Part shown: positions 5,956-50,112 of the stretch, piece after piece
Layout: each line of letters opens with the position of its first letter
Position numbering within the stretch: position 1 is the first letter of the stretch
NCBI RefSeq assembly: GCF_021869535.1
Contig: NW_026262668.1
Span: 74,462,001 to 74,526,000 of the forward strand
Source of the DNA: Mytilus californianus
Taxonomy: Eukaryota
Reading direction: 5' to 3'
DNA: 64,000 nt
Translations under genes and position numbers: made by a program
Notes under the pieces: model-generated
What the model was told of the DNA's origin: nothing
The model's database searches: none
What the model saw: the letters and a program-made list of their open reading frames with translations, nothing else

Positions 5956-6171
5956 TCCTTGAAACTTGTTTGTTTTGATTATGTAGACAGATTTTATTGA
6001 TTCCGTTTAGAATAACATCTTTATCTCTTTAATAAACCAGTGTCCCGTTATTTGCCAAATTTTAAGGGTTTACCTTTGAATTTTAAAGTCCGATATGGAA
6101 ATGTGAAATGCAAGATATAGATTCCTACATGTATACACTAAACTCACTTAACATTTGTCTTCTTTTCAAAA

Positions 6172-6440
6172 ACTTCTTTTTCAGTTTTCAATTGAGTGTT
6201 TCCGAAAATTCCTAAAAGTCTTTCCCTGTTCTGAATGGAGTGTTTCTGAAAATTCCTAAAAGTCTTTCTCAGTTATCAATGGAGCGTTTCCGAAAATTTC
6301 AAAAAGTCGTTCTCATTTATCAATGGAGCGTTTCCGAAAATTTCAAAAAAGTCTTTCTTGAGTTATCAATGCAACGTTTCCAATAATTCCTAAAAGTCTT
6401 TCTCAGTTATCAATGGAGTGTTTACGAAAATTTCAAAAGC
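6172..6440. repeat. 44-bp minisatellite, ~6 degenerate copies
   Basis: GAGTGTTTCCGAAAATT-like unit starts at 6194, 6238, 6282, 6326, 6372 and 6416. Confidence 0.9.
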
Positions 6441-8783: not shown

Positions 8784-8920
8784 TTAGTGCCATTGTTTTC
8801 TTCTAGGCGGTGGCTTCAACTGTCCAGGTTTAGTCTGATCTGAGTTTTCTACTATATCCGGAAGTGGATATCTCGTATCATCACTAGACAATGCTGATTC
8901 GTCAGCCGATATCCCAGAAT
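8784..8920 (-). CDS. Gene A terminal exon 2 (DSGISADESALSSDDTRYPLPD...RRKQWH*)
   Basis: Phase 1 acceptor; homologous to gene B terminal exon 29909-30021 (DSGVSADDS...YPLPD...WH*). Confidence 0.8.
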
Positions 8921-11900
8921 CTGAAATATCATGAAAATCCTCGTTTACACATAAATTCACGATAATCATTTCAAATAATCGGGTAAGTGAAATGGAATAA
9001 TTTTTTTCTTAGGACCAGGAAAACTTCTAGGCGTGACAACTTTAAATTTGCCTTTGTCTATGACTTTCTGTACACGAAACATCATAGCGTCATCGTTTTC
9101 CGCTACTTTTCCCGTGGGAGATTCGTCAGTAGATATTCCGGAATCTGAAATATTGTAAAATAGCTGGTGACGACTTCCATTATTGATTTTTGTGAAAATG
9201 TGTAACAACGAATCCGACATTAACACCACGACATACAAGACAAGTATGTTATTTTAAAACAGGTTTTGGCTACAAAAAGAGAGGCAAAAGATACCAAAGG
9301 GATATTCAAACTAATAAGTTGAATGCCATGGTAAAAAACGAAAAACGATCAAAAGACAAACAACAGTATACAAAACACAACATATAAAACAAAAAGACTG
9401 AGAAACACGAATCCCACAAAAAACTGGTGGTGATCTCAGGCGTTCCGGAAGGGTAAGTTGATCATGCTCCACATATCGCACCGGTCGTGTTGCTTATGTA
9501 AAGTACAAACCCGGTGATAAGATTTTATCGGTAGTTCACATTCGAGGAAAAGAGGACGGAATTGTGGTTACAACAGTTGTACTGCTGTTTGTCTGTTTGT
9601 CGGTTTCCTTTTAGCCATGGCGTTGTCAGTTTATTTTCGACTTGTGAGTTTGAATGTCACTTTGGTATCTTTCGCCTCTCTTTTGGAACATACCGTTAGT
9701 AAACGAATTTGAGTCTGAAAAGTCCGAACAAATAATCATTAAGTCATGTACAGTCTTTCAGTCTATTTTCAGATTTATCGATTATGGTAAAATCAGTACT
9801 GTTCAACAATTCGCTTGCAGTCAATTCAGTATTGTCCAGTAGCTTTTCGGGCAATTCAGTATGTTATTGATCTGTACAGGTAAAAGGTAAAATAACAACT
9901 ACTGAACAGTCTGGGCATATACTGAACAAATCTTAATTGACTGAAAGCAAATTGTGTGAACTCTACTGAGTTTACCGCAGTGGATAAATCTGAAAATTGA
10001 CTGAAAAACTGAAAATGATTTAATATTCTTTTTGCCAGTCTTTTAAGAGATGTTAACGTAAAAAATGACCGTTTCAGACTAAAATTCATTTTTAAGTGAT
10101 ATTCGTCGTCATCTGTGAAACAGATATTCGATAACGGTCAAACAACTTGTGACGGCGCCAGTAAAATTTTCGAAGGGATGATTCAAATTTCTTGGTTTAA
10201 TAGCTACCTTGTGAGTAGCAACCCTCTACCAATGTAATCATTATAGGAAAATTTGCATAACAAAAGGTAATTGAAACAAAACAGGTTGTACATTTTTCAT
10301 GGTTCTTGACTTGGGACAGGCACATAAAGAAAGTGGCGGGGTTGAACATGTTTGTGAGCGCCCAACTCTCTTAGCAAGCCGTTTTCAAAATTATGTTCGT
10401 ATGCTGTTACACCAATGTCAAAGGATATGGGAAGGGCTGAGCAAACCCCGCCATTTTCATTCTGTATGTGCCTATCTCAGGTCAGGAGCCTGTAATTCGG
10501 TGGTTTTCGTTAGTTGTTTTGTACATAAATAAGGCTGTTGGTTTTCTCGTTTGAATGGTTTTACATTTTGTCATGTCAGTGCCTGTAATAGCTTGATAAC
10601 ATGTATATTTCGTCATTTGGTCTCTTGTGGAAACTTGTCTTATTGGCAATCATACTAGAACTTTTTATTTTTATAATATATAATGGAGGTTTTTGGTTTT
10701 TTCAGCGTATATCCCGTTGTGTTTTAACACGATGTGCAATTTTAATCCAAAGTTGTAAAAGTGGTTTCTATTATTTCATGTGGTTATGTTTACCTCTAAA
10801 ACTGATCAGAAATAAAAGCTGTGAAAACAGATTTGAGGTACTCAATCGCCATGATAAGAAATTTTTCAAAACATTCACATTCAGATAAATAAAATTATTC
10901 TGAATCGAATATTGATTTTTTTAGAAAAATATTAAATGGTTTTTGATTTTTTCGGGTAAAAGTTACCAACATTTTTACACTAAGTAGACACGTTTTGGCT
11001 TTATGAAATATTAATTGCAAAAACGCTAAATGGCCTCTACCGTCAAATACGCTTATGCATTGTATTTCGACTACATTTGATAAAAAGAGAATTTGGCATA
11101 TCATATCTAGGAAATTCTTTCGAAAAGTAAAAAAAAGTGTACTGATTCCACAGCCAGTTATTACCCGCAACTCGACAAAAATATATACTGGCCTTACCTT
11201 CATACACCTTTTTATCCATTCTATATGTATTTTCACGCTTTGGTGCAGCTGAAACTAATCTTGGCTTATGGTCAATAGCTGGTAAATGTGATATTTCAGC
11301 ATCCATAAAATTCTCACCATTTGAATCTGAAATAAATTTTATAACTTGGAAAATTGCATATTTTTTTTTGGTTTCCGCACTCTAACTTAAGTTAGCCTCC
11401 TGCATATTTTATGAAACTCATACACAATACTTAGAACCGAAATTCGCAGACAAGAGTCCAAATTTGGGAACCGAATCACTTGCCGTTCTGGAGTTATGCC
11501 GCTTTATAACTTAGAAAATTGCATTTTTTTTCCGTTTCCACACTCTAACTTAAGTTTCTTTACGTATTATAATCAAGCTTGAGCGGCGGCATTCGTGTCC
11601 TCAGACATATTCTCCTTTTATTATGATTTGATTTTTAAAAATAAATCTATTTTGCAGTGGTTATCTTTTGTTATATCCAAAGAGTGTTGCTTTTTGTCAT
11701 TGAAGAGTTTATTTTCTCTTTAAGATAGATCTATTAGTGTTTGCTAAATTTTTGACATTTGCTTAACCTAGGGCCGATTTAGAGCTTTGAATATTGTAGA
11801 GCCAGTTGTATTTTAATACCAAATGTTGACCTATTGGTGTCTTTTTGTTTTATTAATGGCATTGGGTAGCTGCCTGCTAGACCAATACCCACTTTCTGTT

Positions 11901-14900
11901 TTACTCAACTTTCAAACTAAAATGTAGCATTTGCATTGAAAATGAAAAGACATACTAGTAACATATTTATCAAACTTATTTTCAAATGTAATTCTTGCTT
12001 CAAACCTGGGAAAAGTATACTGTCAATATATTATGTCCTAGACAAAAGTGCAATTTTTGGTTACTTTTTTTACAACTTTTGATAAATCTTACTAGTAATA
12101 TACAGTAAGTTAATAAAAAAAAACCCAAACCAACAAAAAATCAAGTCCAAACATACATCCAACAGAATTGATTGACGAAACCTTTGTTTATTGGGTAATC
12201 AAGATACGTAACCGTAACAAAACTTTCCAAATAAAAGAAGTAGATGCAGAAGAAAAGGAAGACGACCGTGTCGTCAATAGTGCCGTATGACATCATATCA
12301 ACCCTTCATTTCTAAGTTACAAACCTGAGGTAACGTCATGGTCTGTAGTGGCGAAATCTCTTGAAGTAAAGCTATCATTAAATCTTGCAATTGTGGTTGA
12401 TGACTTTGCAGGTTCTACCTTCGCATGCTTCATCTTACTTAATGATTTCAAAGAAAGTGTGCGTGTTTGTAGAGATGACGGAAGTGAAAAGGGAGATTTC
12501 CACGATGATTTCTTCTTACTGTATTTCTTTTTCCTCCTGACAGGTTGTTCCATGTTTTTATGTCTTAATTTTGTCTGTAGCATTGATCTTGCATTTTCTT
12601 TTAATTTCTCCGTTGAAGGACGTGTGCCATATACATTTGCTGCATTTTTTAGTGCACTCGGAGTAGGTAAAGTTTTAGATCTTGTCAGTGGTCTCATATA
12701 TGGTGGCAATGGCGGTTTTCGTTTATATCTGAGTGGCGATGGAATTCGTTCCTTTGATTCGCTGATAGTGTTCAACATTCGTGTATTGCTACGTTGCATC
12801 ATTAATTTGATCGTAGCAACAGATGCCCGACGTGACGGATTATTAGGCTTTGAAGGAGGTTTTTCAAAAAACTTGCTCTTTTGGAATGGTTTCCTGATAG
12901 GCTTTGATCTACTGACATCGTTATGCGACACAGATCTATCAAATAGCGACTTACTACTTGGATGTTTAGGAAATTGTCCCATTGAAGTTTTAGATCTATT
13001 CAGATTTTCCTGTGAGAAACTTTTCTTCATTTCAAGCATTCTGGTAGGTGGTCTAGACAGATTGTATACAGAACTTGCTCTGGACAATGGTCGCCGAGGT
13101 GGCGGATGCATATTCACACTAGACATGGTATCATCATACTTGATTCCGTAATTGTGTATAGTGAACTCTCCTAAGTCTGGTAACTCTGCAATGCGAGATT
13201 TAAAACTGGTACTCCCCGATTTCATAGAAGCCGGTTTACTTCTCATTGCACGGTTGGCAGTTCTCCATGGCCACGGCAGATACTGAGGCTCTGTAGGAAA
13301 CTCCTTTGTTGGAGTGTTATTCACGTTATTTAACAACCTTTGTTGTAACGTCTTGTTATTCGTAGCTACTGATGATATGTGGTCTGCACTACTATATTCG
13401 GGACTCTCAAAGTCTGCAATCGAAAATATTAAAGCTGGTTATTGTAAAACATTTTCACTCTGATGTTATATATTTTCGCTATTTTCACGGGAAGAAAATC
13501 TAACCGCCATTATTAATTTACTTTTAGCTATGAATTTGTTATAAACTCAAATCAAAATAAAAAGCCATAAAATTAGTCTGACTAGGCGATTTGCAAATAT
13601 ATTTTAAAATTAGTGTATCAAGAAAACTATTAAAAAAAGGACATAAAACAATGGGAGTTTAATAATACTTGTTCTTCATATGCATTTAAAAATGAAATAT
13701 TGCGAACCAAGTTTTGGTCATCATAATATGGAATTTTAAAATCAGGCTTTTCTTTATAGCAATCATATTTTATTGCTCTTTGATATAAAACGGTGGTTGT
13801 ATTTCATATACTAAAAAATATAACCTTTTTGTGTTGCTAAACTTCTGTTGGAACCATGGAATTGTTTTGTTGGTCCACCAAAGCTTCCAGGATTTCTATC
13901 TGACATTTGTTCGTGGGATGTGTAAGAACGCTCTGTTTGGATTTCAACGTTTGCAACTAAATTAAAAACAAAACAAAACAATCAAAATGATTAAATATAT
14001 ATATTTGAAATGTAATGGAATCTTTAAAGAATAATAATATGACAGGAACAATTATTACAGATTAAAAAAAACACATTAAATAAAAGTCTGTCCTAAAATG
14101 TATATTCCAAATAGCAATAGGGTACTGGTATATAAATACCATAAGAATAAGAAAAACAAAAACAAAAACAAAAAGGATTCAACCATAAGGTATCTATTCA
14201 AACAATCATTATCCGTGTGATATACATATATAATATTGCCTTCATTCAGGAAAATGTTCTCCAATTATTTTCTTTGATGCCACTGTCAATTGACTGTCCT
14301 AGTTCTGGCATGTATCTCGCAGTTTAAAATGTTACGGCGTGCATAACTTATTACTTGTATGAAAGTCATTTTCAACATAAAATTCAAGTTGTAAATTCAA
14401 TGGTATTAAACTGAATTATCAATTTATACCTTTTTAATGTTAACGATTTAAACTCATTTCAATAAAGGAAATGGCATCACTGTACTTTTCTCTAATATCA
14501 ATGGATCATGCTTTACATTTGAGATATTTGTCGTTATATGTCGTTCACTGTTTTCTGGTTTCTGTGGAGGTCTGTTAGACATTACTAAGTTGTAAAACTT
14601 GTGTCTGATCCATTTGTCAGTTTGAACAATACAATATAAACTAACGCTAGATAAGTCTGATATGTAAAAGAGAGGCAAAAGATAATGAAACTCATGAGTC
14701 GAAAACAAACTGACAATTCATGGAAATAAAAGAAAAACGATGATAAAAATATAAAAGTATACAAAACACATTGAAAACTAAATACTGAGCAACACGAACC
14801 CCACAAAAAACGGGGGTGATCTGAGGTCCTCCGGAAGGGTAAGCAGATCCTGCACAACATGTGGCTTTATTATTTGTAGATTATCATATTTCTACTTTTG

Positions 14901-17900
14901 ATTTATGAAAACAGAAAGTGTGTAACCATTACACAAATGCGAGATTAATGATTGTGATTTAAGTAAATGCTGCATACAAATGCTATAAAAATTTCAAAAT
15001 GCAAATTTTTATTTTTGCGAAACATACCCCGTAGCAATTTTCGCAATGAAAACATTGCAAAAATCTCTGAATTTACAGTACCTGTGGGCATACTATATCG
15101 TTTTGATTTTGGGGTAAGTTTCAACTGTAATGGCATTGGATATCCATTCTGTGGGAAATCTGGTACAAGCGAGGCTTCATTCAACGGGTGTTCATCATCA
15201 AATTCTGAAATATAGATAAATTCATTCGAAAATGAAATATAAAATTTTCATAATTAGATATCACAATTAGGGCAATCGGGAAAAGTATCAAACAAATTAT
15301 TTCTTTTGAATGATCTCTGCTTAAATTCAAAACAACAACACATGCCCAACATTTACGTCTTTTTCACTATAGACAATGGTGTAAAACGTGTTTATTACTC
15401 TTAATTTTGGAATATATGAATATTCAATTGGTTGTGTGCTTGTTTTTTTTTTTTGTTTTTTTTTTGTTTTTTTTAGACACAGCCATTAGAAAAATAATTT
15501 ATTTTGTCAGTCCTTATTTTTGAAAAGGGAAATTGAATTAGAATTTGCACCGGCATAAGCATGAAATTGATTAATCTGCTGGCAGAACACTATTTTTCTA
15601 TTTTAATCTACTGCTGTTTCCCTTTTGAGAGCACTGTAAATACCAAAAGGCTATTGTTTCAGACTAGTAAGATAAATGCCAAAGGCTTATTTCGAACCTA
15701 CTTTCACTGTGGTAGAATGGATTGGTTTTTAACGTCACGTGGTACATATTACATACATAACAGGACAAGAATATTTGATCTTGATGTGATGTGATTATGA
15801 ATAGACACACACGCGGGTCGGATGTTTAAGCTGTTAACACCAAAGGTGACAGTCTGCATGCAAATATATCACCCTACCAAGACACATTTTTTACTCCGAG
15901 GAGACTACTTGCTCTTAAATGCGGCGTGCTTAGCGAAGAAGCAGCAAACACCAATTTTTAAATCTTTGGTTTCAGCCGGCTGAGGGCCGAATCCACGACC
16001 TCTCAAGGCGAGCACACTATATCAAAATCACAGAGGCGGTATTTTGAATTAGGCATCTAACGACTTTCACAAACTACAACTAATTTTTCAACTTATTTCT
16101 ATTAAAATGGTAACATTTATGAAAAGTTAAATAACAACTGATGACTTTTGATAGAAAAAAGTAAAAGAACAAACAGCAGAAAAATGCCTCATATAATTAT
16201 GGAACACAATCTTCGAGAATAGATTAGGTCCAATTTAAAAAAAATAGCCTTATACAGAAACGATTGTGTGGTAATTAAATCTTATTGCGTTTTATACAAT
16301 TCATTTCCGTAAGGCACTGAACATTCGTATTTTGGGGGACAGGGGTTGGCATTGATTAAAAGAAGTTGTCAGATTTTGAATTTCCTTAAAATAATAAACA
16401 AAGGAAATGCAAGAATATATTTTTTGTATAGTTTTTCTTTAAGTTAGTTTAAGTATAATAACAAAATTGATTTAAAAAAATCATCCTTGTTCCTGTACAT
16501 AAAATTGAGAATGGAAATGTATATAAATCAAAGTTTACAAAAAAAGTATTGACCTATGAACATGCCCTCCCACACACATGGTGCCTAAAATATAATATTT
16601 ACCATCCATTGCCATTTTCTTTTCAAAAACTTTAAGATTTCTTTGCTCTAGAGCTTTGATTTTGTCTCGTTTCTTCTTCTTTTTACAGCAACAATAAATT
16701 AGAAGCGCCAGAAGAAGAAGAAATAGCAATCCAAATATAACTCCAAGTACAATGGGTAAAACGTTCACGGAATCTTCCGTAAATGCTGTAAGTAAACATT
16801 TATGTACGATTCTTAATTACAGATTTATAAATATATGTGCATTTTAAACAATACATCATCATTTTTAGCTTATGAATTATGCAAATGTATTTAAAAGAAG
16901 GTTGACCTTTGACTGCTTTTGTCGTGTTCTCGTCGGACTCTTTTTAACGTTGAAGCTCTCAAATATTTCATTTATTTGGCTTTTCATACCTTTAGTCTAT
17001 TTAGGGTTAATTTAGAAAAAAAATATGCCCGTTCACTGAATGCATATATGATACTCGCTAAAATTCTTGTGTCTATAGCTTTTCGCTTAAAGTGATCATG
17101 CTTATATACTTTGTATCTCATCTTCCAAAGTTTGATTGTAGTGCCAAATTTATTCCACTTGCAGAAATTTTGTAATTGCAAATTTATATGTTTTTTTTTT
17201 CAATTAGTTTCTGTCTTCTGTCTTGCACTTGCATACTGTTAATATCTTACCAAAAGTAGCACATAACACAGCAATCTCTTTTATTCACAGCAATTGTTAA
17301 ATTAAAAAAAAATAGAATTAAAGAAATAGTCAGTATTCCCCACTCTCCCAAGAAAACTTACAAAAACACAAAAACAAATTAGAAGAACTGCATTTCGTTT
17401 ATACAGTTCTATAGCTACAGAAACTTATACTTACGACAGGTCACTAAAAGAAAGAAGAAAATGAAACAACATTGGTTCGTTGAATTGAAAAAAAATAACA
17501 GCTAAATCATTTAAAACGTAAAATTTAAGGTTACATACTTTGCAACTAAATCTTTCAAACTGTTCAGTGTATTCAAAATTTACACATATCGAAAACTTTC
17601 TTGTTTTATAATATTATTATTCGCGTGTGAAAAGTATATACAAGATATATTTGTGTAATAGAACAACATACAATGTATATGGTTACATAATATTTGCAGT
17701 TTCTTTAAAGTTCAAATACAAGTATTTTTCGTACATATTCAGAATATTTGTTTTCTTTTAACGTATAAATATTTTACATTCAAGTGTATCTTTTAAAATA
17801 ATAATGAAATGCCATTATATAGTAGATTTACGTGTCCAATAGAAATGAAAACAGAAAATAAATGAACCGAAGATGAACACGTATATCAAATAAGAGTACA

Positions 17901-20900
17901 AATATCAGTAAGAGATGACTGAGAGGATCTTGGTTTGGCACATCTATGCTTTTATTCCAAGTTTTTCTTACATTTGCTTTTTTCCGCCCTATGGTCGATT
18001 ACATTTTTCAATTTCTATTTTTTCATTTCTGTCGGGCTGTTCATGAAAGTTTTTGTAAGATTTCCTTGTCCGATTTTAAAAAGAATTTCACCTTTTATAG
18101 TGTGCTTATTATTTGATGGATATTTTCTCCCTTCGGCTTACACCCTTTTCTCTACATCAGACCACCTTTACCGTAGTATGTTGCCCTCTAGATGTATTTT
18201 GGTTATTTTTGTCGTTGGGAAACACAACGTCTCATTGACGTTTACCCCGCATCTTCTTTTATTTATACAAAACTCTCAGTCGGGATTTTGCGAATTTTAA
18301 TTGTAATATGTCGTCTGTTCCTTGGGTGGGATAAAAAAGTAATTAATTTGTGATCTATTCCATATACTAGTAATATAACTGAGAGTCTAAAACTCGATCA
18401 GATTGCAAACAGAATATTCGTGTTTCCTAGTAAGATATTAAGTATACTTGAAATTTCAGAGCCTTTTATAGCTGACTATGCGGTATGAGTTTTGCTCATT
18501 GTTGAAGACCGTACAGTAACCCAGGCTATATAGTTGTTAACTTCTGTGTCATTTGGTCTCTGGTGGAGAGTTGTCTCATTGGCAATCATACCGCATCTAC
18601 ATATTTTTATATGTACATGACTATAAATGTCTGAAAATACAGGTTCAATCTCACCAATAGGTAAGTTAAGTTTAAAAAAAAATAACAATTGCAGTTATGC
18701 TTTTATTCAAATGCATGCACATATTTAACATAAATTTTGAATTTGCAAGGAGGAGAAATTTTGAAATATATTTGAAATTAGGAGAAATTTTACGAAGATT
18801 TGTATGTTCTCCTTCGTAGCTTCGTGCAGTTCATGCGTAATAATCATATTTACCGCTAGCTTTCAGAATGTAAAGTTGACCGGCAGTAATAGTTGTTGAA
18901 AGTTGATTTGCAGTGCATCGCTTCTGACTTGTGCTTACAAATATATGAGTTCCGTTTGAAGTCGCAGCCTGCAAATAAGCAAAAGACACTACATATATAT
19001 AAATCTTTCTATATTATCATATTTATGCGATGAAAATTTCAGTCAATAATACGCAGTTGTTCTCTTTTTTTTTTCTTCTTTTTTTTTTGAAAAGAATAAA
19101 ACATTGGGACAACATCACATCAAACACCGACAAAATCTATTTTATAACGAAACAGCACAACGAATACGTTAATTACATGTGTATTAACAAGTCCTCTAGT
19201 TTAAAATAAAATTTTAAAAAAGCATATTAAAATTTGTTTAAAGTTAAAGCTGTTAACAAAAATCAAATTTAGTGCCCCTATTTCAACAAGAAAGGGAGAT
19301 TTTCTGGAATTGTATTTTAATGTTTTCCATATTTTTAACATATAAACAAGTTCACTATATATATGCCCGAGATTTTGCGGTTATGAATAAAATCCAAAGA
19401 ATAAAAAGTAATCGATCCGATGCCGCGGCATTGTTTTGTCACCTGTTGTCTCCCCTCTTCTGTGTTTTACTTCAATAAAATACGTAATATACATGTGTAT
19501 ATGTAGATAATTAAAACTTTCATAAACGCCACTGATAATAACTTCAACTTACTATACAAACGAATTGAAATGTTGTTAGATCATTTGGCGTTGTACTGTC
19601 CATATTGTATAGGCCTGAATAGTATGTACCACCTCCAGTACTTGAATCATAAATGACAGACAAGCAACCAAGCTTTCCATCGCCTGTTAGAAAAAAAAAT
19701 ACTAATGAAATAGAGATTTTCGTAATTCAATAAAGTACTCTTATTTTCACGCTTAATTGCAATGGTACACTGGTCATAAATATGCAAATCTAGCTGCTGC
19801 ACACGTTTGCTGGTCTTTACATGGTTGTTAGTGTATATGTAGAGAGAGATCGTCAAAAACGGCTATATATACATGGTATTTGTTGATAAAAACTCATCTT
19901 TACTACGGTTACGATTGTAGCTGGGTTTTTGTTAACGTTTGTAGATTCCGAAATAATTAAAATTGAAAACACATGTTGAAAATTCAAAAAAATATTATAT
20001 AAAAACAAAATTTAATGTTTTCTGCTTATAGATTAATCTTGGACATCGTTAAGAAACAATAACTCAAAGTCCAGTCCATATTCGCTTTAACCTCTTGTTT
20101 ATTTGTAATAGACTCTTTTTAATGTATGATAATGCATCTTGCTATTTTATAAATATCCAAGTTAAAACCGGAGGTTCCAAATTTAAGTTTCAACATCGAA
20201 GATATTTTGTGATAAACTTCTTTAAAGTGAAAGTTAAAAAGATAAAAAGAAATATATGTGAACATATTTATTTAGTATGACGTCCATTATCACTGAACTA
20301 GTATACCTATTTGTTTAGGGGCCAGCTGAAGGACGCCTCCGGGTGCGGGATTTTCTCGCTGCATTGAAGACCCATTGGTGGCCTTCGGCTGTTGTCAGCT
20401 CTATGGTCGAGTTGTTGTCTCTTTAACACATTCCTCATTTCCATTCTTAATTTTATACTGTATGTTATGTAAATAAATATTAAACAAATCAAACATCAAA
20501 ACTTGAAAGTGAATATTTAAATACAGTTCTTACTGGTGTACATTCCAGAACCTGCACATGTTGCCTTGTTGAACTGAATAGACTGCCTATTATCACCGCC
20601 ACAAACGGTTAAATTATCATTCTGACAATCTGCCATGCTACTGGTTGGTGTCCCGTAGTAGTAAGTAAAATCGCCCAATATATGCGTCATGCAGTTAGTC
20701 GTTGCTGATGATGCTTCTCCTAAAATCGTATAAGAAAAATATACTTCAGGAGTATGTTTCGTAGGAATTTGATGAATTGGTTCATTGCAAAGTAAATCAC
20801 GTGACCTAGGAAATGATTCGTCTTAGTCATGTGCTTATTGTTTGGTAAAGGGTTGTAAATTGGTGTGTTCTCTAAACAAAATGAACATCTGTCATTTCTT

Positions 20901-23900
20901 AAAGAAAACAATAAAACTTATCGTTTTATAATATTAATTGATATTTTGAATAAAAAGGTTTCATCTGATCATAGATGTATAAACCCATAGATATGGGTTT
21001 ATACAATTGGGTTTATACATCTATGATCTGATAAATTTTTTAAAAATTAAGATCTAAATGGGCATAACGTATAGCCAGAGGCAATAAATTTGTGTAACAA
21101 TATAAACTAAAAATCTGAAATTTCAATTCTAGCATCGTAAAATTCTTATTATAAAAGTTCCCATGAAAGGTCAGAAAAACACTAGTTCTAAACACATCTC
21201 TGTATGGATTTAGATGAATAATAAGAAAACGTTTTCATTGCAAAGGGCTCTTTTTTTTCAGAACTGTAAAACAATGGTAGTTTACATTATAATTATTCGC
21301 ATTTTATTCTATCATAACCATGATAATTTGAACATATCACAGGGATCGTTGTCCCATAATAAATTAGATCTAGACAGTTTGCAAGTTTAACCTTTCCAAA
21401 AAAGGTATAGAGTGCTTGGCAGAAAATATCTGACATCATTGACTGTTATATGATACAGTAACTGATATATAGTGCAGGCGGTGTTGTCCCGATATCACAA
21501 TAGCATGAGTTCGAATCCCGGCGAGGGAAGAACAAAAATTTGCTTCCGCAAATTTGCAGATTTAACATTGTTGTGCTGATATTTAGAGTACTTATATATA
21601 TATATATATATATTTAATATATAATTCGTCTAAATAACAGCCCAACAATGTTAGATCTGTAAATTTGCGGAAGCAAATTTTTTGTTCTTCCCTGGCCGGG
21701 ATTCGAACTCATTCTACTGAGATATCGTGACACCAAATCGCCTTGCACAATGCCCGACGCGTTATACCACTCGACCACCTAGGCTCGACAAAAATCAAGC
21801 TTTCGATGGCCGGGTGTTACCTTTCCTCGTCAGTTTTTATCTAACGTCGTAACACAGTACATGATATATAAGGCATGAAGATGGAATATTACAGATCAGC
21901 TGAATTATCTTTCGTAGAGGATCTTACAAATTAATGTAGGATGCAGTCACAGAAATAATTATATTATAAGTACGTCTGAACCAGTGACAACTCTACGACA
22001 GATTTTATAACTGATGTAAAACATGGGATCGAATTCCTTAAGTGATAATTGGTTTTGATTGTTATATGTCAGTTTATGTTACTCTATTAATAATGTCTAT
22101 AGATCTGATATGGCATTCAAGAAATTTAAAAAAAAATCTATGTTTCATCCCGACAAAAATAATTTCGGTTTTTTTGGTATTGTTCGGTTGCTGTGTATAC
22201 CTTCATCTATACTCAGTCTGTTATTCATTATATGACAATTGTATTACTAAAATAAATACCGTAAAGTAAGTATAAACGGCACAGACAAAATGTGAAACAA
22301 TTCAAATAAAAAAGCTTATTGATGCTAAAAACAATAACAGAAAAACAAATATGACCGACAGCAACTACCGACAACCACTATAATAGCAGTAATAATTATA
22401 CTTGTATTACATACAACCCGTGACATATCCAAATTAAACACATACCACTTTTGACCATACTGTTAAATTCTGCTGAAGATGGTAGTGAACTGCATAACTC
22501 ACTGTCTGAAGGAGATGAAGTTGTCTCCCAAAAACTAATGCGTTCATTTCCGAAAACATGATTTTCATCTAAAAAAAAAGAACAAAATCCTGCTTTGCGA
22601 AATTTACATATCAGTGATTAGAATTAAATAAAATGTTTAAAACAAGGGAAAAAAGGATGATAAGAGTTTATCTTTCTGTAATCTACCACGTTTGACACTA
22701 GAACATCTCACTTTTGGTCGTGTAAAAATTCATCTTACTGGAATGGAAGTGCAACAAAACAAAATCTTAAAAAGTAGAATACTGCTGACACACACTAACA
22801 TTGTATCTGTCTTTATATCATACTGAACATCATTATGATAATTGAATAAGTAGTTAAAATGTAAAAACGAAGTACATGTAATTTGTTTAACCAAGGTAAC
22901 ATACTGTGGGCGTTGGTTCGTTATGAAAAACGATACTGTGCACTATGAATAAACTATGTAAACGACAAAACATCAAAATCACAAAAAGCAAATAGTAAAT
23001 ACAAGTATCAATGAATATTTTGGATATATCGTAATCAACTGTTACCCAAATTTTTGTTGGAGATCAGAAAACTTACTTAATTTTAGTTTATTTATATGTT
23101 TTGGAGTTTAGTGTGACGTCCATTTTCATTGAACTAGTACACAATTTTTTAGGGACCAGCTGAAGCCCGCCTACGGTGCGGGATGTTCTCGCTGTGTTGA
23201 AGACCCATTGGTGGCCTTCGGCTGTGTTCTGCTCTTTGGTCGGGTTGTTGTCTCTTTGACACATTCCCCATTTCCATTCTCAATTTTATTGAAGTCATTA
23301 GGGCCACATCAGGGCCTTTTAGGGTACATCCCTTGATGTGATGATATTGTCTGTATGTGTAACAGCGCGAGATATTTGCGCTTTTTGCTAGGACAATTGC
23401 TATTTTTAATGAAAATTTGTGCTTTTTTAATGGATATTTGTGCTTTTCAAAAAGGTCATTTCCGTTTTTTTAATAGGACATTTGCGCCTTATCAACATAA
23501 CTTTTGAGGTATCATAATGGTTAAGAGTTTAAGAATCATTATATATCCAAAACACAGCACATTCAAATATTTATCTACAGCTAAAAGACTGAATCTTTCG
23601 CCGTCATGCTTATGGAAGTAAATTCCATATAACAACCACGAACAACAGGTGGTTAAAAAATCAAATTGTGGTCTAAACAAATTGTAACAAGCTTATTTAC
23701 TATGACGGTAGAGTTCCTCGGACTTTCCATGCAATAGAATGGACACGAGATGATTATAGTTTCCATTTTTAAATCCACTAATGGTACATGTGTTTAAAGT
23801 GGCTTGAAGAATTTAGGGCACAATTTAAATGTTCCATCCATAAAAATTTCGTTTTCTCTGCCGTTTACCCGAATTATTTTTTTTTTCTCATTTTGTGGTC

Positions 23901-24664: not shown

Positions 24665-25211
24665 CTAAAAAATGCAGTCACTGTGGTATTATAGCACGTT
24701 GTTTCTTTAAAGTAGTACTAGTTGATATTAAATCAAATAAAAAGAAATCTGTTCGCTTTGAAGGTGTTATATCAATAAAAAATATAAGAGCTATACGTTA
24801 ACGAGACAAACCCCGTAGACATTAAAAACCTCTAAACAAGTTATATTTCTTCATCCGTTATATCAAATATATACGTAAAATCGATGAACAAAAAGAAAAA
24901 CAGTCCGCAAAATACGTAATAAAACAACCGAAAACTAAGGGTGAACTCAAGTGGTCCGAATGAGTTAGCAATTCCTGCCTCACTGGTGGCACCCGTCTTG
25001 TGCTCATGACAAGTAAAACGTCGATGATAAGTCGTATACAGTGATGTCACATTCGAAGAGAAGTAAGCATACCCTATGAGGTAGATCATCGATACGACTG
25101 TATAAGTTTAAACTACCGTCAAAACAGATTATCTAGTTAAGATAAAATAAAACTCATCATGCTTCACGTTAATTGTGAAATAAATGTAGAGTATACATCA
25201 ATGAGACGGCA

Positions 25212-25873
25212 ACAGATAACTAAAATAACATTTAGATGTAGACGTACTACGATATAGTCTACAACAATACACAGGTGTCTATACAAATAAACGAAACAGA
25301 TAACTAAAATAACATCTAGATGTAGACGTACTACGTAATAGTCTACAACAATACACAGGTGTCTATACAAACAAACGAAACAGATAACTAAAATAACATC
25401 TAGATGTAGACGTACTACGTAATAGTCTACAACAATACACAGGTGTCTATACAAACAAACGAAACAGATAACTAAAATAACATAGAGATGTAGACGTACT
25501 ACGTAATAGTCTGCAACAATACACAAGTGTCTATACAAACAAACGAAACAGATAACTAAAATAACATCTAGATGTAGACGTACTACGTAAAAGTCTACAA
25601 CAATACACAGGTGTCTATACAAACAAACGAAACAGATAACTAAAATAACATCTAGATGTAGACGTACTACGTAAAAGTCTACAACAATACACAAGTGTCT
25701 ATACAAACAAACGAAACAGATAACTAAAATAACATCTAGATGTAGACGTACTACGTAAAAGTCTACAACAATACACAGGTGTCTATACAAACAAACGAAA
25801 CAGATAACTAAAATAACATCTAGATGTAGACGTACTACGTAAAAGTCTACAACAATACACAGGTGTCTATACA
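25212..25873. repeat. 84-bp minisatellite, ~8 copies
   Basis: CAGATAACTA recurs at 25381 and 25801 (5 x 84 bp); copies are near-identical. Confidence 0.95.
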
Positions 25874-29908: not shown

Positions 29909-30021
29909 TCAATGCCAAACTTGACGTCTGGCGTTAGCCTTGAAACTTTGAATGGTGTCTGGCAGTGGATATCCTTCTTCAAACAAAGACGAAGTTGAAT
30001 CGTCTGCTGAAACACCCGAAT
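29909..30021 (-). CDS. Gene B terminal exon (DSGVSADDSTSSLFEEGYPLPDTIQSFKANARRQVWH*)
   Basis: acatttcag acceptor in phase 1; homologous to 8784-8920. Confidence 0.82.
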
Positions 30022-42000: not shown

Positions 42001-45000
42001 CAGCGTCCACCTGTACTATATGAAAATAAAACATTTTTTCTTTGAGAACTAGGAAATAAAATGCAGTTTCTTTTCAATGAAATATTGTTGATGTTTTTGG
42101 CAACTATAGCAGCAACATTGCCGTTATTAAATAAAAATATTAATTTTTCGCTATCTGATAATTGAAGGTTAAAATGTTCATTAAAATGTTTAGCTTAATG
42201 TATCATAATTTGTCTTAAATCTACATATAATGGGCATTTTAAAATGACATGAAGTTCATCTTCAATAGTAGAGCTACAACACATGTCATCTCGTGGACTT
42301 CTTTTCTTTTATACTTTCCAGTTTCTATTTTTAGTGGAGCTACCCCACATCTAAATTTTGCAAAAGCACTGTTGTTTTTAATTGGCGGAATATTTTTAAC
42401 AAATAACAGTTGGCCAACAGTATATTTTTAAGCCCATTTCGCTCAGTTGAATAGAAATTCCAATTTATTGTTTGTACGTAGAACATGTATCATTATATTA
42501 AGATGTGTCAGTCCCAGCCAAGATTCACTGAATAACCACGAAATGTTTACAGATGATAAATAAATTTTACACAAAAATTCATGAATCTGTATGAACGTTA
42601 TGTACGATGAAGTTAATCAAGTGTTCACAAGAAAGTAAGTATGAATGTAAATTTTATTTAAAGTCGGAACATATATATACACTTTAACCGTGAGATAAAA
42701 TATAAGCTTTGATGAGCTCTATAACCGACTATCATATAAAAACCGCAATGAATGAACGTTACCCGATTAGAGATGAACGTTTGACAAATGCACGTTATCT
42801 GATGTACACAGTTATACACGATTGACGAACGCACGATACACGGTTAAGAATGAATGATTGATGAACGCACGATACACGCACGATGCACGCACCATACACG
42901 ATTAAGAATACACGGTGCACGCACGTTACACGGAAAATACACGGAACGATGAATGATGAGCGCACGATTGGTACACGCACGATACACGCACGCAACACGC
43001 ACGATACACGATGAACGCACGAAATAATGGTCAGTTTGAATTTTAGAAGGTCTGTAACAACGTAGACCGTGACAACTTCAGCAGCGAAAAAAATATACAT
43101 GAAATGATTTGTTAGTATTTGCATGGCGGGTGATGTATGCATAGGAGACGCGTACCTTGTTGACACATCCGTTATCGCTCCTTTTGGAGTTCATGCGATT
43201 GCATCTGTTTTTGTTTTAACCTTCATTTATATCTTCTTAATGGATTTATGAGATTTGAACATTGGTAAGCTACTGTTGCTTCAAATTTTCATCAAAGTAA
43301 CAAAGGTTCTTTTTTATTTGCATTACACTTCATTTTGGTCTGTGTGGCGTATATTATGTAACTTACAATTAAACTTATGTAAGATTGTCCTGTTTTTCTG
43401 ACGTGTGGTCAGAATAACATTAATTTCATGAAGATATCAATAGTTAATGCTAAACTTTTTCAGACTTACTAATGCTAATTTAACGTAAAGGTACATGAAG
43501 CAAGCTGCGTATTTTAAGTAAATATCGATTTCTAGACGTAACAAAGGTTATTCACAGACTATGTCGACAATCTTGTCCAATGTAAACTCAGTCCTCTTAT
43601 CAAAATCAATGTGCCATATTTTATAAGTGTTTTGTTTATTAACTTAAGTTTGTCTTACAATTTCAATATGATACAATTTTCTTACATGATAACAGATTTA
43701 CCTTTCACTGTCATTCTCTTTTTAAACACACTGATATTATTCTTTATTGTTGATTTGAGTTTCTGCTTTTGTCTTTGTTTTTTACAGTAAAAATACAGTT
43801 TGTATATTATTATAACCAGCAGAATTAGAAAAATTAGTCCGAAGATAACTCCCAAAACAATGGCGACTATGTTAACAGAATCAGATGATGATGTGAATGC
43901 TACAAAAATATTAAAATAAACACTGAAAATTATGAAAATTCGTTACTAATGACATATATACAATTATAAATATTACAAAACACCTAATAATAGTACACAA
44001 AAAAGTATTGCATCGATCATTAAAACGTTTCTGTTTTGGCATATCTTGCTTAGCACGTCAAATGTACACTGTATTTCGCCATTTACCGGAGGCATGCAGT
44101 TAACGTTTATAAATGATCTATATACAAATGTACTTCAAATAAGTTAATATTGAGATTTTAAAAAAATATCCGTCAAAAAATATACAGTGTCCATTTTAAA
44201 AAAAATACCATAACTGTTAACAATCAGAATGTTATCTGTGTAAAAAGAGTAAAGTTCTGACGTTTTGTACAAAAGTCGATAAAAATTAACGGTAAATACG
44301 TCGAGTAACGTTACCATTGCTTTAAAAACAGAACACCGTGCGTTACACGGGATCCTGACAAACCCTTTACTACATTTGCATGCCATTTGTTTCGTTGAAA
44401 AGATGACATAAAGGATAGTTGATAAAGATTTAACTGGTGTAACGGTATTTTTTATATATATGCTACGCAAATTTACCGCATTGGTATATAATCTTAAATA
44501 TATGGTAGTATACACCAACTGTATAATATATATTACAAATGCATATATAAACATTTAAAGAGGCGTTAATTTGGCTGATTTTAACAAATTAAAAAAATCG
44601 TCGCGAATACAAATAAAAAAAAGAAGCATATTAGTCATTTGTTGAGTGTCAAGTTTAAAAAAAAAACATACATCTAAAAACTTTCTTTTTGCTTTGTGGA
44701 TTTGAAAATACTGTATATTTTGGAATGATTTAAATGTAAGTCAATTTGAAACCTCTCATACGACTGGGTCAAACAGATTTACTTGAGAAAATAAGTCTTA
44801 TGGAAAATGCAAAAAAAAATAACCATTGAAGTTGTTTAACAATAGGCTTCATTTACTTTATGATGGATCGATATAATCCTATGTTTTAAAACAAATGAAT
44901 ACTTATGAAATGACAATTCAATTTATTTACAGAGATATCTTAGTAAATCTGAATACTTACGACAAGTGGCTACAACAAAAAAATTATTTAAATACACAAA

Positions 45001-48000
45001 ATGTAAAACTGTACATTTTTCTATAGCATTTTTCATAGATATCTTAACGTGTATATAAAAATAAGGAGATGAGGTATGATTGCTAATGAGACAACTATCC
45101 ATCAAAGTTCAAATAAAGTGGATGTAAGTAATTATGGGCAACCGTAAGGCCTTCAACAATGAGGAAAACCCATACCATATGGTCGGCTCTTTTTTTTTTT
45201 TTTTGCTATGACGATGTCTGTATGTTTTCGACTTTGAGTTTCTATTTTTCAATACGATTACATTATGTAGTGGTGAGATAATGAGACCTCCTTTGCACCA
45301 GACCAGCACGTTGCGTCGAGTACATAATGTGCATAATGTAATAAAGGTAACTGTGTTGTGGAAGACATGTCAGTCACCCTATCTGAACATGATCGACTTC
45401 GAGTCGACCTGTCTTCGTTACTCACGAACCCGTTTGCTACGAAGAGAAACAGCATGTACACCTTTCAAATATCTCACAAGTGTAGGTATGTACTAAACGT
45501 AGATCTTTAAAAACTAATTATTGAACAACAATAAGGATAAACAAAAAATAAATAGATCTAGTCTTGTCTTCTTTAGACATGTTAGACAAGACAGACCCTT
45601 TAAGGCCGTTTAAAATATATACAATTTCGATCCTAAGAATCCTACCCATTTATATAAACGTATATTCATTTAAAAAGGTATCCATAATTGCACTTACTTT
45701 TAGCAGTCATAACATATAATTCACCATCATTTGGCTTTATAGTTGAACTCTGGTCTTTCTCACAACGTCCAGGACTTGCTGTTAATCTCCTTTCTGTATC
45801 AACGATGCTCACAGCCTGACCAAATATAATTCATAAATTTGAGTTGGGTTTTTTTCTGTGTGTTGTTTTCTTTCTTTCCTTTCTTTTTGTTGTTCAATTC
45901 TTATTTTTACATCTATTTAATTATTTTATAGTCAGTTTTATCTTTCTTGGGATTTTTTTGAATAATGCATTTATGACAGGGAATCGATAAATGTATCACT
46001 TTCGCCGTTGATGTCCCATTTTATATTTAGATTGACTTTACTTGACGCCTCAATTGTTGTTGCTTTTGTTGTTGAAATTTCTTAATTATAAGCTTTTATT
46101 GATATATTATACGCAATATGTTTTCTAAGCAGTGAAGATAATTGCATTGCTGTACAAAACACTACTTACAATGCAAATAAAACGAAATGTTGTCAAATCA
46201 TTTACAGAGCCTGGATTGTATAAACCGGAATAATAAGTTCCCTCAGTGGAGTCTGGTGTAATGGCTGATACACAATACAAATTACCTTCAGCTATAAAGC
46301 AAATAGAAGGATTTTAATAGCAGGACTTTTGTAACTCAATGTATATTTTAACAGAATATGTTCTTTAGTGTGTACAAAGTGTACAAAGAACGTCGAAATC
46401 AAAAGTGCTTGCTTAATGAGTAGACCATAGATTTAGAGAGTACCTATAGATGCTACTAGCCCATCAATTCGTGGTACACAGTCAGGTTAATTAACATGCA
46501 AAAGGATGATATAACAACTGTTTGGCTAGTTTGTTTTGATAATAATGTACAATAGCAAATAAGGAATCCATGGTTTATCTAACAAACTTAAATTTACTGC
46601 ATTAAGTACACATTCAAATAGTTCAGCTGTAACTGTAATTTTGATTAATTTGAGTTTGCTGTCCAGTGAAAAATATGTCTTGCATATTCAGGACGAGAAC
46701 AGATTAACAATACACCCAATAGGTATAGAAATGGGTTTTTTTTTCATGCAGAAGATTAATAACGGACCTCTAAGAATTTTTGCAATTGTTCTTTAACGTA
46801 TAACGAGCTTTCTTCCTACAAGATACACCAATTTAACATCCTGATTCTAACCGGACGTGGCTGAGTATTTATACATCATGCACTGCCAAACTGATGCCCC
46901 TCTTTAACATATGTTTTGCTTCAGTTAAGAGGGAATCCAAGGATTGCCATATTTGTATACTTCAGTCAACCCTTGATGGTACTAGATTTGTTGACTGGTA
47001 TACGGTAAATTGAAGGCTTAGAACGTTTATTTCGCCCCTGACTTTATGTGTATAACTTCTTTGTGCAAGTTGAAATGCTAAAAATATAATTTTAAATTAT
47101 TTTGTTGTTATGTTTTATTTCCATTGTAAAGCACTGTGCACATTACCCTATATTCTATGCGATATTCATTTTCAAAATGCTTTCATTAGCAAGACTATAA
47201 GTTAGTGTTTTGCTTCAGACCATTTCTAATTACATTTGATATTGAACAAATTATCTGTTTTATTTTACAAAATTATTTGCAATTCTTACAAAAATTCCAA
47301 CAAAAAATTTGACCGTAGTTAATGTTTTAAAGCCCTATGGCTAGATTTCATTTTTATTCTTTTCTTTACTCAGAAAGCAGTAAGTAATTTACATAATGCA
47401 TGCGATTGAGTTTTTATTCTATTTACAACCCATGAGTGAAACCTACACCAAAATAAAACAACTCGAATCTCACCAGTAAACATAACTGACGATGTTGATG
47501 AAGTACATTGCTGGTGTAGATTTAGGTCAAAAGTTAAGTTTTGTCTGTTTTCACAGACAGTCAAAAGACTATTTCCATCCCCGTTACAAACATTTGTAAA
47601 TGTTGCCGACGTCAAGGAATAGTAAAAGTTACCAAGGAGTGGATCCATACAGTATGTCTTCGACGAACTTGAATAACCTAAAGGTCAAATCGAAACAAAT
47701 GAAACCTTAGGATGTATATGAACATTTTCGTATCATTTCTGTGTCTTTAGGTTAGTTAAGGTTCATTAATGTTTTGTTGAATGAAATGTAATAAACATAA
47801 TTAATTATACTAAAAGAAACCAGTATTCGAATTAGTTGAAGCTACGAGTAATTTCTAATGTTGACGACAGAATGACAAAATATAGGGTACTAATTTCAGA
47901 AAATTGCTTCGAAAGATTTACTAGGGCGAATATGTATTTGATGAATTCATAATTGGTAATGAATTGTGTTTTCTAGACATATTTTGCTATTTTTCCTGCC

Positions 48001-50112
48001 TAATCAAGAAGGGGATTTTCATTCTTTTTCTGTCATACTTTTCCTAAAACTGTCAGTAAAGTTATAATTCATGGAATTTGGTCATCCCAATGTTTAGTTC
48101 TGAATGATCCTGATAAAGCTTAATCCAAAAGTACGCATTTATATAAACAACAATTCAATATCTTATGCAACATTAATATTCAATGTTTTATTTGTTCTTT
48201 CACATACACACTTTGCTTTATTTTTACATTGTTTGTTTGTTTGTTCTGTAACTAAATATAAACACTTTTTTTTTAAAGAAAAGTCTACGATTAAGATAAA
48301 AAGAAATGTAGCAGCTAAAACATCACCATTTACATTTTTACCGCTAGCATTACTATATTTACCAACTTTGACCATACTGTTGAACTCTGCCGTTGTTGGG
48401 GTTACAGTACACTCAGTTCCAAAGTCTGGATTTACACCTGTTTCCCAAAAACTAACACGCTCATTGGCAAATCTGTTGTTTTCCACTGATATAATTATAA
48501 AATCAATAAAAAGTAAAAGTATAAAAAAACAAGTATTGTGATTATTCCTCGTATTCTGTTACATCAGATGGAAATAAGCTGTATATTTTTCTCTGTATTT
48601 ATTTATTTTTAATAACGTTAGATTTTGTCAGTTGCTAAGTACTTCCCCTTTTTGAATTTCATACCTTTGAGTTCGGTATTTTTGTTATACTTTTTTCTGT
48701 TAATTAGGTTTCAAGTAATCTTAGAATCTAGTACACATGTAATTTCCTATTATTTTGTATTTGACAGTGTTTTTTTTCGATACTGAACCTTGATTAATAA
48801 AATATAATCATTCGCCTGGGTTTCTTAAGACATCAATCGGTGATAAAACTCTACGGTGATCTACTAAACATTTCTATGAAACATCATTTTATAAATTTTT
48901 ACTTTAATATTATCACATGGTTCATACTTCCTCTTGAAAAGTTAATATCCTTAGACAGGTTATGTTTGGGTTTTTTTTTCTTGTTTGGTATCGATTGTTT
49001 TCAATTTATTTTTGTTTTGGTAATTTGTGTTTTGTGTTTTGTTCTGTTTTTGTTTACAATGTTTTCCCAAAATCTTCACGACCTGTGAATATGCGCATTT
49101 CTTATGAAGGTAAGTTCCGTGTGGCGTTTCGCACGCAATAAATACACCTGTGTATGGCTGTTATAACATGCCTGTACACCCTCAGCACCGAACATTTTTT
49201 GTATCTCAAGAAAAGAATCTATTTTAAGAATTAATTCGTTCTTTCACACTTATAATTTGAAAAGCATATTAAAATGTTTTATACTTACATGACCGCAAAT
49301 AAAAGTAGTAAGAATTTTCGTTAACTCGGGTGAATGATAAACATATATAAAGATATCCAGTTTTCCCGAGATCTTCAAATGGGTGGTGATTTCTAAATAA
49401 AAGATTATTTTGGATTTAAAACATTATCGTTGAACTCTGTCTTATGTCTTCAAACACGTGTTTGCCCCACAAAGCAAACTTTCGATTGACATTTGTTGCC
49501 TGTTTGTAAACCTATCATATATAAAGTTTGTACGTATTTATACATCCCTGGCTTTCCAATTTTTGAGTTGAGCGTTCCCGATGAAGGTAAATCTAGAAAA
49601 AAGCTTTGGACGTACGAAATGTATCAATATCAGTGTTCATTTTTCTCTTATTAGCACTGGGTCGATAAAACTGTTGGTTGGTTGGATGCTGATATTTTCA
49701 TTTTTCAGTTTCTTTAAATCTGGCGGCGCAATGATAGTGAAAACAGCAGATATAGAAAATGAAAATAACAAATAACAAAATAAGTAAAAAGAAAATGATC
49801 AGAAAACAAATACAAAAAGAACAATGCCCGAGGTCGTGTGTCAATATAAGACTTCTTTACATATAACAAAACTCCAAATGACTATTTCGTACAGAACTTC
49901 ATGTTTGTTTAGAGTCTACCTGATTAGATAATATTCTGGTGATGACTGACCAAGGAAGCAATCAAACACAGTTGAACTTGTGGATCCATCAATTCTGAAC
50001 GAATGTTTCTCCAATGTTAGTGTACTGGAATTGATGAGAATTGTTCCATATTCACTACTATCCCAGAGTGCTTGTAATGCTTCAGGGAACGTACAGTGAC
50101 ATCTTGTGTGGT
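29909..50112 (-). CDS. Gene B: paralog of gene A, ~770-800 aa. Exons: 49920-50112, 49289-49392, 48363-48485, 47474-47677, 46170-46291, 45698-45815, 44961-44969, 43702-43899 (TM), 34903-34998, [32385-32465], 31069-32091, 29909-30021
   Basis: GT-AG introns with phases consistent throughout; exon-by-exon homology to gene A; TM is IVAIVLGVIFGLIFLILLVIIIY. First coding exon unresolved. Confidence 0.85.
31069..32091 (-). CDS. Gene B large cytoplasmic exon
   Basis: 1023-bp open frame within ORF 31049..32233; tactttcag acceptor, gtatgt donor. Confidence 0.9.
32385..32465 (-). CDS. Gene B candidate cassette exon (ENNPHLVNTKKADNRTFRRKTETGRW)
   Basis: Open phase 1/1, AAG acceptor, gtaatt donor; same position as 13825-13956. 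Confidence 0.45.
33262..34811. mobile_element. Non-autonomous hAT-superfamily DNA transposon, 1550 bp
   Basis: TIRs CAGGGATGGG...CCCATCCCTG, perfect 8-bp TSD ATCATATC (33254-33261 and 34812-34819), subterminal arrays of the palindrome TAATCGATTA; no transposase ORF. Confidence 0.9.
34903..34998 (-). CDS. Gene B cytoplasmic exon (DNDEYPLHEISLGPEFPKARNQLYKKKRLVPK)
   Basis: Phase 1/1; homologous to 15082-15204. Confidence 0.82.
35247..35490. repeat. Degenerate (CACGATACACG)n tract next to the left TIR
   Basis: Seen directly; produces spurious RACIV-repeat ORFs. Confidence 0.85.
40355..40515. mobile_element. Short MITE (CGGATCCAG...CTGGATCCG ends); truncated opposite-orientation copy at 35748-35840
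   Basis: Inverted termini; shared ATGTCCCCATTCAAATGCATTGA block. Confidence 0.7.
42190..42490 (-). mobile_element. Decayed LINE ORF2 C-terminal fragment
   Basis: SAFAKFRCGVAPLKIETGKY then, after a frameshift, CSSTIEDELHVILKCPLY. Confidence 0.75.
42745..43027. repeat. Degenerate (CACGATACACG)n tract next to the right TIR
   Basis: Seen directly; same orientation as the 35.3-kb tract. Confidence 0.85.
43702..43899 (-). CDS. Gene B transmembrane exon
   Basis: FTSSSDSVNIVAIVLGVIFGLIFLILLVIIIYKLYFYCKKQRQK; phase 1/1; too short for the ORF track. Confidence 0.9.
44961..44969 (-). CDS. Gene B 9-nt microexon CCACTTGTC (T-T-C-P across junctions)
   Basis: tttttgttgtag acceptor, gtaagt donor; paralogous to 17435-17443. 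Confidence 0.75.
45698..45815 (-). CDS. Gene B ectodomain exon (AVSIVDTERRLTASPGRCEKDQSSTIKPNDGELYVMTAK)
   Basis: Phase 0/1, gtaagt donor. Confidence 0.82.
46170..46291 (-). CDS. Gene B ectodomain exon (EGNLYCVSAITPDSTEGTYYSGLYNPGSVNDLTTFRFICI)
   Basis: Phase 1/0, gtaagt donor. Confidence 0.88.
47474..47677 (-). CDS. Gene B ectodomain exon (YSSSSKTYCMDPLLGNFYYSL...QQCTSSTSSVMFT)
   Basis: Phase 1/1, gtgaga donor. Confidence 0.85.
48363..48485 (-). CDS. Gene B ectodomain exon (ENNRFANERVSFWETGVNPDFGTECTVTPTTAEFNSMVKV)
   Basis: Phase 1/1, 123 bp. Confidence 0.88.
49289..49392 (-). CDS. Gene B ectodomain exon (NHHPFEDLGKTGYLYICLSFTRVNENSYYFYLRS)
   Basis: Phase 2/1, 104 bp. Confidence 0.85.
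49920..50112 (-). CDS. Gene B ectodomain exon (HTRCHCTFPEALQALWDSSEYGTILINSSTLTL...FDCFLGQSSPEYYLIR)
   Basis: Phase 1/2; homologous to 24481-24664. Confidence 0.85.

Follow-up and report, generated by a model that had tools for sequence, protein, structure and literature searches.

A 64,000-nt stretch of the genome of the mussel Mytilus californianus (contig NW_026262668.1, positions 74,462,001 to 74,526,000; hereafter the window) carries two minus-strand genes in tandem, here called gene A and gene B. The reading favored, at a probability of about 0.6, is that each locus is a single gene whose product, a single-pass type I membrane protein, belongs to the DUF7042-7044 family of molluscs and has a double-barrel ectodomain and a long disordered tail. 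That each locus is one gene is new with respect to the RefSeq annotation, and for gene A the single transcript was observed.

Gene A extends from 26901 to 8784 in 14 exons, its product being 911 or 897 aa depending on whether the last exon is 9144-8966 or 8920-8784; gene B (51868-29909) has 12 exons and encodes 783 aa. Both full models translate free of stops, every intron is bounded by GT-AG, and the window has no runs of N. Comparison by blastp of the minus-strand stop-to-stop translations of 8000-28000 with those of 28001-51000 gave ten collinear exon matches (expectation value, E, 1e-8 to 6e-32); the intron phases (1,2,1,1,1,0,1,1,1,1) are identical in the two genes, and exons of 49, 104, 123, and 9 bp are equal in length. 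A tandem minus-strand pair with common exon order and intron phases was what the original prediction, made from the letters alone, had proposed, and its exact 104 and 123 bp exons were reproduced by splice-site and phase reasoning; the starts of its two modules are also as it gave them, and read CTFSSSLEGTW (A) and CTFPEALQALW (B) for the N-terminal module and CMTHILGDFTYYY (A) and CMDPLLGNFYY (B) for the C-terminal one. The span it gave leaves out the signal-peptide exon of gene B (51868-51820), and its exon set had missed exon 1 (26901-26853), exon 7 (18968-18854), two tail exons, and the alternative last exon of gene A, exon 7 of gene B (45815-45698), and a 9-nt microexon in both. The donor of gene A exon 6 was placed at 19553, in phase 0, by RNA joints and RefSeq. 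A weakly matching pair of pieces (23430-23528 and 49079-49243) was rejected as an exon; the models close without it and the RefSeq proteins lack it. Between the two genes, identity is 48.6% for the ectodomain and 35% for the tail. The joined models were used for the translation check, the A-B alignment, the substitution analysis, and the tree, while database and fold work employed exon stretches or public proteins, the fold and homolog searches being made with the gene A ectodomain. The exons are as follows.

26853-26901, minus strand: gene A exon 1, start codon and signal peptide, 49 nt, phase 1 out (tblastn of XP_052090750.1, splice model)
24481-24664, minus strand: gene A exon 2, start of the N barrel (C-T-F...G-T-W); alone a weak match to DUF7043/7044 (blastp, tblastn, splice model)
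24035-24138, minus strand: gene A exon 3, 104 nt (tblastn, splice model)
22446-22568, minus strand: gene A exon 4, 123 nt (tblastn, splice model)
20534-20719, minus strand: gene A exon 5, start of the C barrel, DUF7042 module, C-M-T-H-I-L-G-D-F (spliced RNA contigs, splice model)
19553-19683, minus strand: gene A exon 6, phase 0 out (RNA joints, splice model)
18854-18968, minus strand: gene A exon 7, end of the C barrel (tblastn, RNA contigs, splice model)
17435-17443, minus strand: gene A 9-nt microexon, TGACCTGTC between ttag and gtaagt, V-T-C, 12th conserved Cys (RNA contigs, splice sites)
16603-16785, minus strand: gene A exon 9, transmembrane helix and basic juxtamembrane stretch (RNA contigs, splice model)
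15082-15204, minus strand: gene A exon 10, 123 nt, cytoplasmic (tblastn, RNA contigs, splice model)
13825-13956, minus strand: gene A exon 11, cytoplasmic, no counterpart in B (tblastn, splice model)
12325-13413, minus strand: gene A exon 12, 1089 nt, disordered basic tail with conserved short motifs (blastp, tblastn, splice model)
11198-11326, minus strand: gene A exon 13, no counterpart in B (tblastn, splice model)
8966-9144, minus strand: gene A alternative last exon a, RefSeq isoform X1, ends ...PDYLK (100% tblastn match to the RefSeq protein)
8784-8920, minus strand: gene A alternative last exon b, isoform X2, ends ...KQWH, homologous to the last exon of B (blastp, tblastn, splice model)
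51820-51868, minus strand: gene B exon 1, start codon and signal peptide, 49 nt (RefSeq comparison, splice model)
49920-50112, minus strand: gene B exon 2, start of the N barrel (blastp, splice model)
49289-49392, minus strand: gene B exon 3, 104 nt (blastp, splice model)
48363-48485, minus strand: gene B exon 4, 123 nt (blastp, splice model)
47474-47677, minus strand: gene B exon 5, start of the C barrel (blastp, splice model)
46170-46291, minus strand: gene B exon 6 (blastp, splice model)
45698-45815, minus strand: gene B exon 7 (splice model)
44961-44969, minus strand: gene B 9-nt microexon, CCACTTGTC between tgtag and gtaagt, T-T-C (splice sites; shortly past it, at about 44926, the 319-aa RefSeq model stops)
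43702-43899, minus strand: gene B exon 9, transmembrane helix (blastp, splice model)
34903-34998, minus strand: gene B exon 10 (match to the RefSeq LOC127730288 protein)
31069-32091, minus strand: gene B exon 11, 1023 nt, disordered basic tail (blastp, RefSeq match, splice model)
29909-30021, minus strand: gene B last exon, ends ...RQVWH (blastp, RefSeq match, splice model)

RNA was examined over 15001-21000 in three runs of transcriptome contigs (X1, X3, and X4, from one study with at most two samples) and one raw run (X21). In each of the three contig runs, a single contig of 3.8-4.2 kb joins ectodomain, transmembrane, and tail exons of gene A (blocks 20720-20533, 19682-19552, 18967-18854, 16785-16603, and 15204-15082), and the stretches skipped all have GT..AG ends on the minus strand; spliced transcripts, on which the original prediction had staked itself, were thus seen for gene A. 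At the joint of 18854 and 16785, the contigs of all three runs have nine additional letters which match 17443-17435 exactly, a site flanked by a polypyrimidine tract and AG on one side and by GTAAGT on the other; this is a 9-nt microexon encoding V-T-C, and its counterpart in gene B (44969-44961) encodes T-T-C. The microexon is the source of a family-conserved cysteine, as [VT]-T-C-P recurs across the family ahead of the stalk or transmembrane helix and the modal cysteine count is 12, to which gene A without the microexon would fall one short (11); it is absent from the 304-aa RefSeq model of M. californianus and from the M. coruscus model CAC5380356.1. In the raw run, only intronic repeats were covered and gene A exons were not. 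Two short intronic repeats (18400-18600 and 20271-20400) stand out in all four runs by RNA-contig depths that run to thousands and by an abundance of loose ends; they seem to represent a dispersed element of which many loci are transcribed, and they cause spurious joints, for example 15081>20355.

A word search with the tail exon of gene A gave a cluster of Mytilus proteins. Exons of the window are matched at 100% by three M. californianus RefSeq entries: XP_052090750.1 (304 aa), XP_052094558.1 (554 aa), and XP_052094559.1 (540 aa). RefSeq has four genes here, at each locus an ectodomain protein that ends in translated intron and a tail protein (for gene A, the pair LOC127727676 and LOC127730287; for gene B, LOC127730288 of 414 aa, with a 319-aa gene upstream) that begins at a Met four residues ahead of the end of the transmembrane exon. 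An identical split is found in M. edulis RefSeq, and the gene A split also in M. galloprovincialis and M. trossulus. Read literally, each locus would produce a secreted double-barrel protein of 304 or 319 aa, ending in a retained intron, and a separate cytosolic protein of 554 or 414 aa, and the agreement of four Mytilus annotations speaks for this; it is nevertheless very improbable, because the split is bridged by the single RNA contigs in three runs, intron phases run on across it, and, with the cytosolic models starting where they do, the transmembrane helix would belong to no gene. Further, a transmembrane helix follows the ectodomain in 70 of 122 relatives (32 models stop right after the ectodomain), the halves are united in older models of M. 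edulis (940 and 900 aa) and M. coruscus (684 aa), and the read-through tails of the short models are intron translated past exon 7 or past the microexon. The RefSeq split of each gene is probably an artifact.

As single genes, A and B have a hydrophobic N-terminus and one transmembrane helix (residues 309-330 in A, 318-340 in B) followed by a run of K, R, and Q; by simple hydropathy a type I layout, with signal peptide, one transmembrane helix, and a positive-inside cytoplasmic C-terminus, fits both. The ectodomain of about 285 aa has 12 cysteines in A, all of which recur in B together with a thirteenth in the mature part, in good agreement with the single-pass, receptor-like protein with a cysteine-patterned ectodomain of about 280 aa that had been expected. 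The long noncatalytic tail likewise held up: the tails (552 aa with a net charge of +41 in A, 438 aa with +45 in B) are rich in Ser, Lys, Pro, and Arg, and Pfam scans found no domain in either. Conserved in them are YLPWPWRTA, YGIKYDD, SRPPT, RRASV, and DSG[IV]S[AT]D, motifs which, besides scattered single-motif matches, are common only to close mytilid relatives and one M. coruscus paralog. RRASV resembles a basophilic-kinase consensus; DSGISADES resembles a beta-TrCP phosphodegron, the canonical spacing of which (D-S-G-x-x-S) it misfits, and no claim is made. The alternative last exons of gene A both start D-S-G-I-S-[TA]-D-E-S, for which reason a local exon duplication looks likely; an older M. 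edulis model splices from within the first into the second.

The original prediction had likened the ectodomains to the DUF7042-7044 group, and that link proved right. With the 304-aa ectodomain (XP_052090750.1) as query, phmmer of the HMMER package returned 145 cluster representatives at E ≤1e-3, of which 73 reach E ≤1e-10, and almost all align across the whole of about 270 aa; among 123 homolog ectodomain slices, 105 match DUF7042, which is the second module, 19 match DUF7043, and 8 match DUF7044, and several homologs carry the UniRef label “DUF7042 domain-containing protein.” Gene A itself stays under the Pfam gathering cut-off, which is 27 bits for DUF7042 (PF23069) and for DUF7043/DUF7044 (PF23070/PF23071): its C-terminal module alone scores 24.4 bits against DUF7042 (a significant match, E 3.1e-5, profile positions 2-113 of 123; 25.1 bits in orthologs), and its N-terminal module 23.7 bits against DUF7043 (25.8 bits in the M. 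coruscus ortholog) and 13.8 bits against DUF7044. That both modules score just under 27 is why public records list no domain for gene A; Pfam scans of full-length proteins reported no DUF7042, and gene B, scanned exon by exon, gave no match to it. Gene A has every one of the near-invariant cysteine columns (C26, C34, C49, C63, C99, and C118, in its own numbering), and B matches them.

The closest comparison is with M. coruscus CAC5376044.1 (A0A6J8AXV3, a “DUF7042 domain-containing protein”), to which the gene A ectodomain is 40% identical over 11-291 (E 2.8e-40) and whose DUF7042 region (53.8 bits) is 38% identical to the C-terminal module (E 3e-20); it also shares the tail motifs PWPWR, KYDD, SRPPT, and DSGISADES. 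In most of the family the tails are unrelated. All 19 named genuine relatives looked up are molluscs, the genera being Mytilus, Pecten, Argopecten, Mizuhopecten, Mactra, Ruditapes, Mya, Ostrea, Sinanodonta, Potamilus, Haliotis, Aplysia, and Elysia. A cichlid fish match in 10 stretches was dismissed as spurious, being a low-complexity protein with no DUF704x domain, and a word search with the 304-aa ectodomain gave no match but is uninformative, as its cluster is represented by a tail-only protein. No strong full-length match to a characterized family was found, nor did a literature search on DUF7042, DUF7043, and DUF7044 turn up a paper. These comparisons place genes A and B as divergent members of a catalogued but unstudied mollusc family.

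An AlphaFold2 run with a 123-row alignment gave an all-beta model of the ectodomain with a predicted local distance difference test score (pLDDT) of 91.7 and a predicted template-modeling score of 0.89; the second module modeled alone has eight strands (pLDDT 89.7), and the top VIA structural matches of the model are all eight-stranded up-and-down lipocalin-like barrels. On the strength of the models, the ectodomain is confidently predicted to consist of two 8-stranded lipocalin-like (calycin) beta-barrels, a naming of the fold that is new here. Foldseek returned nothing at E ≤1e-3 for either model, and the family profile, searched against the PDB sequences, brought up no more than two antibodies, both chance matches, and no APCDD1 chain. 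An internal duplication as the origin of the two modules was rejected, the profile-profile probability from hhalign being 0.6%.

Both genes are under purifying selection. Relative to the orthologous loci of M. edulis, at a synonymous divergence (dS) of about 0.26-0.27, the ratio of nonsynonymous to synonymous substitution rates (dN/dS) is 0.10 for gene A (ectodomain 0.09, tail 0.12) and 0.21 for gene B (ectodomain 0.11, tail 0.29); introns align with those of M. edulis in patches only, at 76-82% identity. The tandem order in M. edulis is B ectodomain, B tail, A ectodomain, A tail, and then a guanylate cyclase gene, and an ortholog of the B tail is also found in M. trossulus. In a FastTree phylogeny of 101 ectodomains A and B are sisters (support 90) on long branches, adjoining an M. 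coruscus paralog. Synteny with M. edulis, dN/dS, and the placement in the tree together indicate that the tandem duplication is old, predating the split of M. californianus and M. edulis, and that both copies are maintained by selection. That gene B (or A) is instead a decaying duplicate without function might be argued from the two tail exons and two conserved tail motifs that B has lost relative to A, from its tail yielding no Logan-derived proteins, and from B having no direct RNA evidence here; but such decay is scarcely credible given the intact 783-aa frame of B with all splice sites present, its low dN/dS, overall and above all in the ectodomain, and the retention of the pair in M. edulis and of the B tail in M. 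trossulus.

In M. edulis the guanylate cyclase gene (L001, 26584-27746), which encodes a receptor form with NIT, HNOBA, and Guanylate_cyc domains, is located some 9 kb downstream of gene A; the equivalent position would be just beyond the start of the window. At the other end, a 123-aa open reading frame at 60306-60674 on the minus strand matches the von Willebrand factor type C domain (PF00093, 30.6 bits, E 4e-7) and probably represents part of a further gene, as one of its exons, upstream of gene B. Tandem repeats occur in intron 1 of gene A (25211-25875; 84-bp unit, 7.9 copies, 97% identity), where they create a spurious 236-aa minus-strand open reading frame, at 63192-64000 (432-bp unit, 1.9 copies, 99%, reaching the end of the window), and at 6164-6439 (44/134-bp units, 81-82%).

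As to function, the protein would begin with a signal peptide, an N barrel (DUF7043/7044-like, 4 Cys), and a C barrel (DUF7042, 7 Cys), continue through a short stalk with the microexon-encoded V/T-T-C-P (12th Cys) into the transmembrane helix, and end in the basic, Ser/Lys/Pro-rich disordered tail. Six disulfides would be expected, the microexon Cys being the partner of the odd seventh Cys in the C barrel. From the analogy to lipocalins and APCDD1 we tentatively infer that the barrels, locked by disulfides, may bind an extracellular ligand, either a hydrophobic small molecule or a lipid-modified one, and that the tail, having no enzymatic domain, may relay or scaffold via phosphorylated linear motifs. 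Only slightly less probable is the alternative that the double barrel is a module for recognition of proteins or glycans or for adhesion, for example in immunity or self/non-self discrimination, with no pocket for a hydrophobic ligand: the family is large, fast-diverging, and mollusc-only in the sample examined, some members have EGF arrays (such as a “notch-like” protein of Pecten), and several of the top structural matches bind proteins (Tp0751, potempin, a type VI secretion system immunity protein, and barrels of the fHbp/TbpB type). However, the ectodomain dN/dS of 0.09-0.11 is unlike that of typical arms-race receptors, and the barrel fold class is best known for ligands held in a cavity.

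Bivalves and gastropods have at least 145 clusters of this family at 50% identity, and the predicted double barrel would be the first structural hypothesis for it. The corrected gene models and the conserved microexon are useful by-products; studies of expression, proteomics, or evolution built on the split RefSeq models would misread one receptor as a secreted and a cytosolic protein.

Among known systems, barrel likeness to the ectodomain is seen in Tp0751 pallilysin (5JK2), lipocalin-like proteins of Bacteroides (4QRL/4GZV), and fatty acid-binding proteins, at 6-10% sequence identity and with Foldseek E values that are not significant; these lipocalin/calycin matches are soluble and single-domain, unlike the membrane-anchored double barrel predicted here. 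The nearest known working analog is the vertebrate WNT inhibitor APCDD1 (PDB 8E0P/8E0R), for which a pair of lipocalin-like barrels, six disulfides, and anchoring in the membrane are described; the architecture is called unusual, and it binds lipid as well as WNT7A (PMC10193966). By sequence the mussel proteins appear to lie outside the APCDD1 family: Pfam scans of M. edulis, M. californianus, and M. coruscus proteins gave no match to the APCDDC domain at E ≤1, and the N and C modules compared above by hhalign are not recognizably homologous to each other, as the barrels of an APCDD1 protein would be expected to be. A bolder and improbable proposal is that DUF7042-7044 proteins form a counterpart of APCDD1 expanded in molluscs, whether by analogy or by very distant homology, whose tethered double barrels would capture lipids or lipid-modified signals such as palmitoleoylated WNTs, and whose long, phosphoregulated tails would allow them to signal and not merely to sequester. 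If the predicted fold is right, they would join APCDD1 as a second case of a tandem lipocalin-like ectodomain anchored in the membrane.

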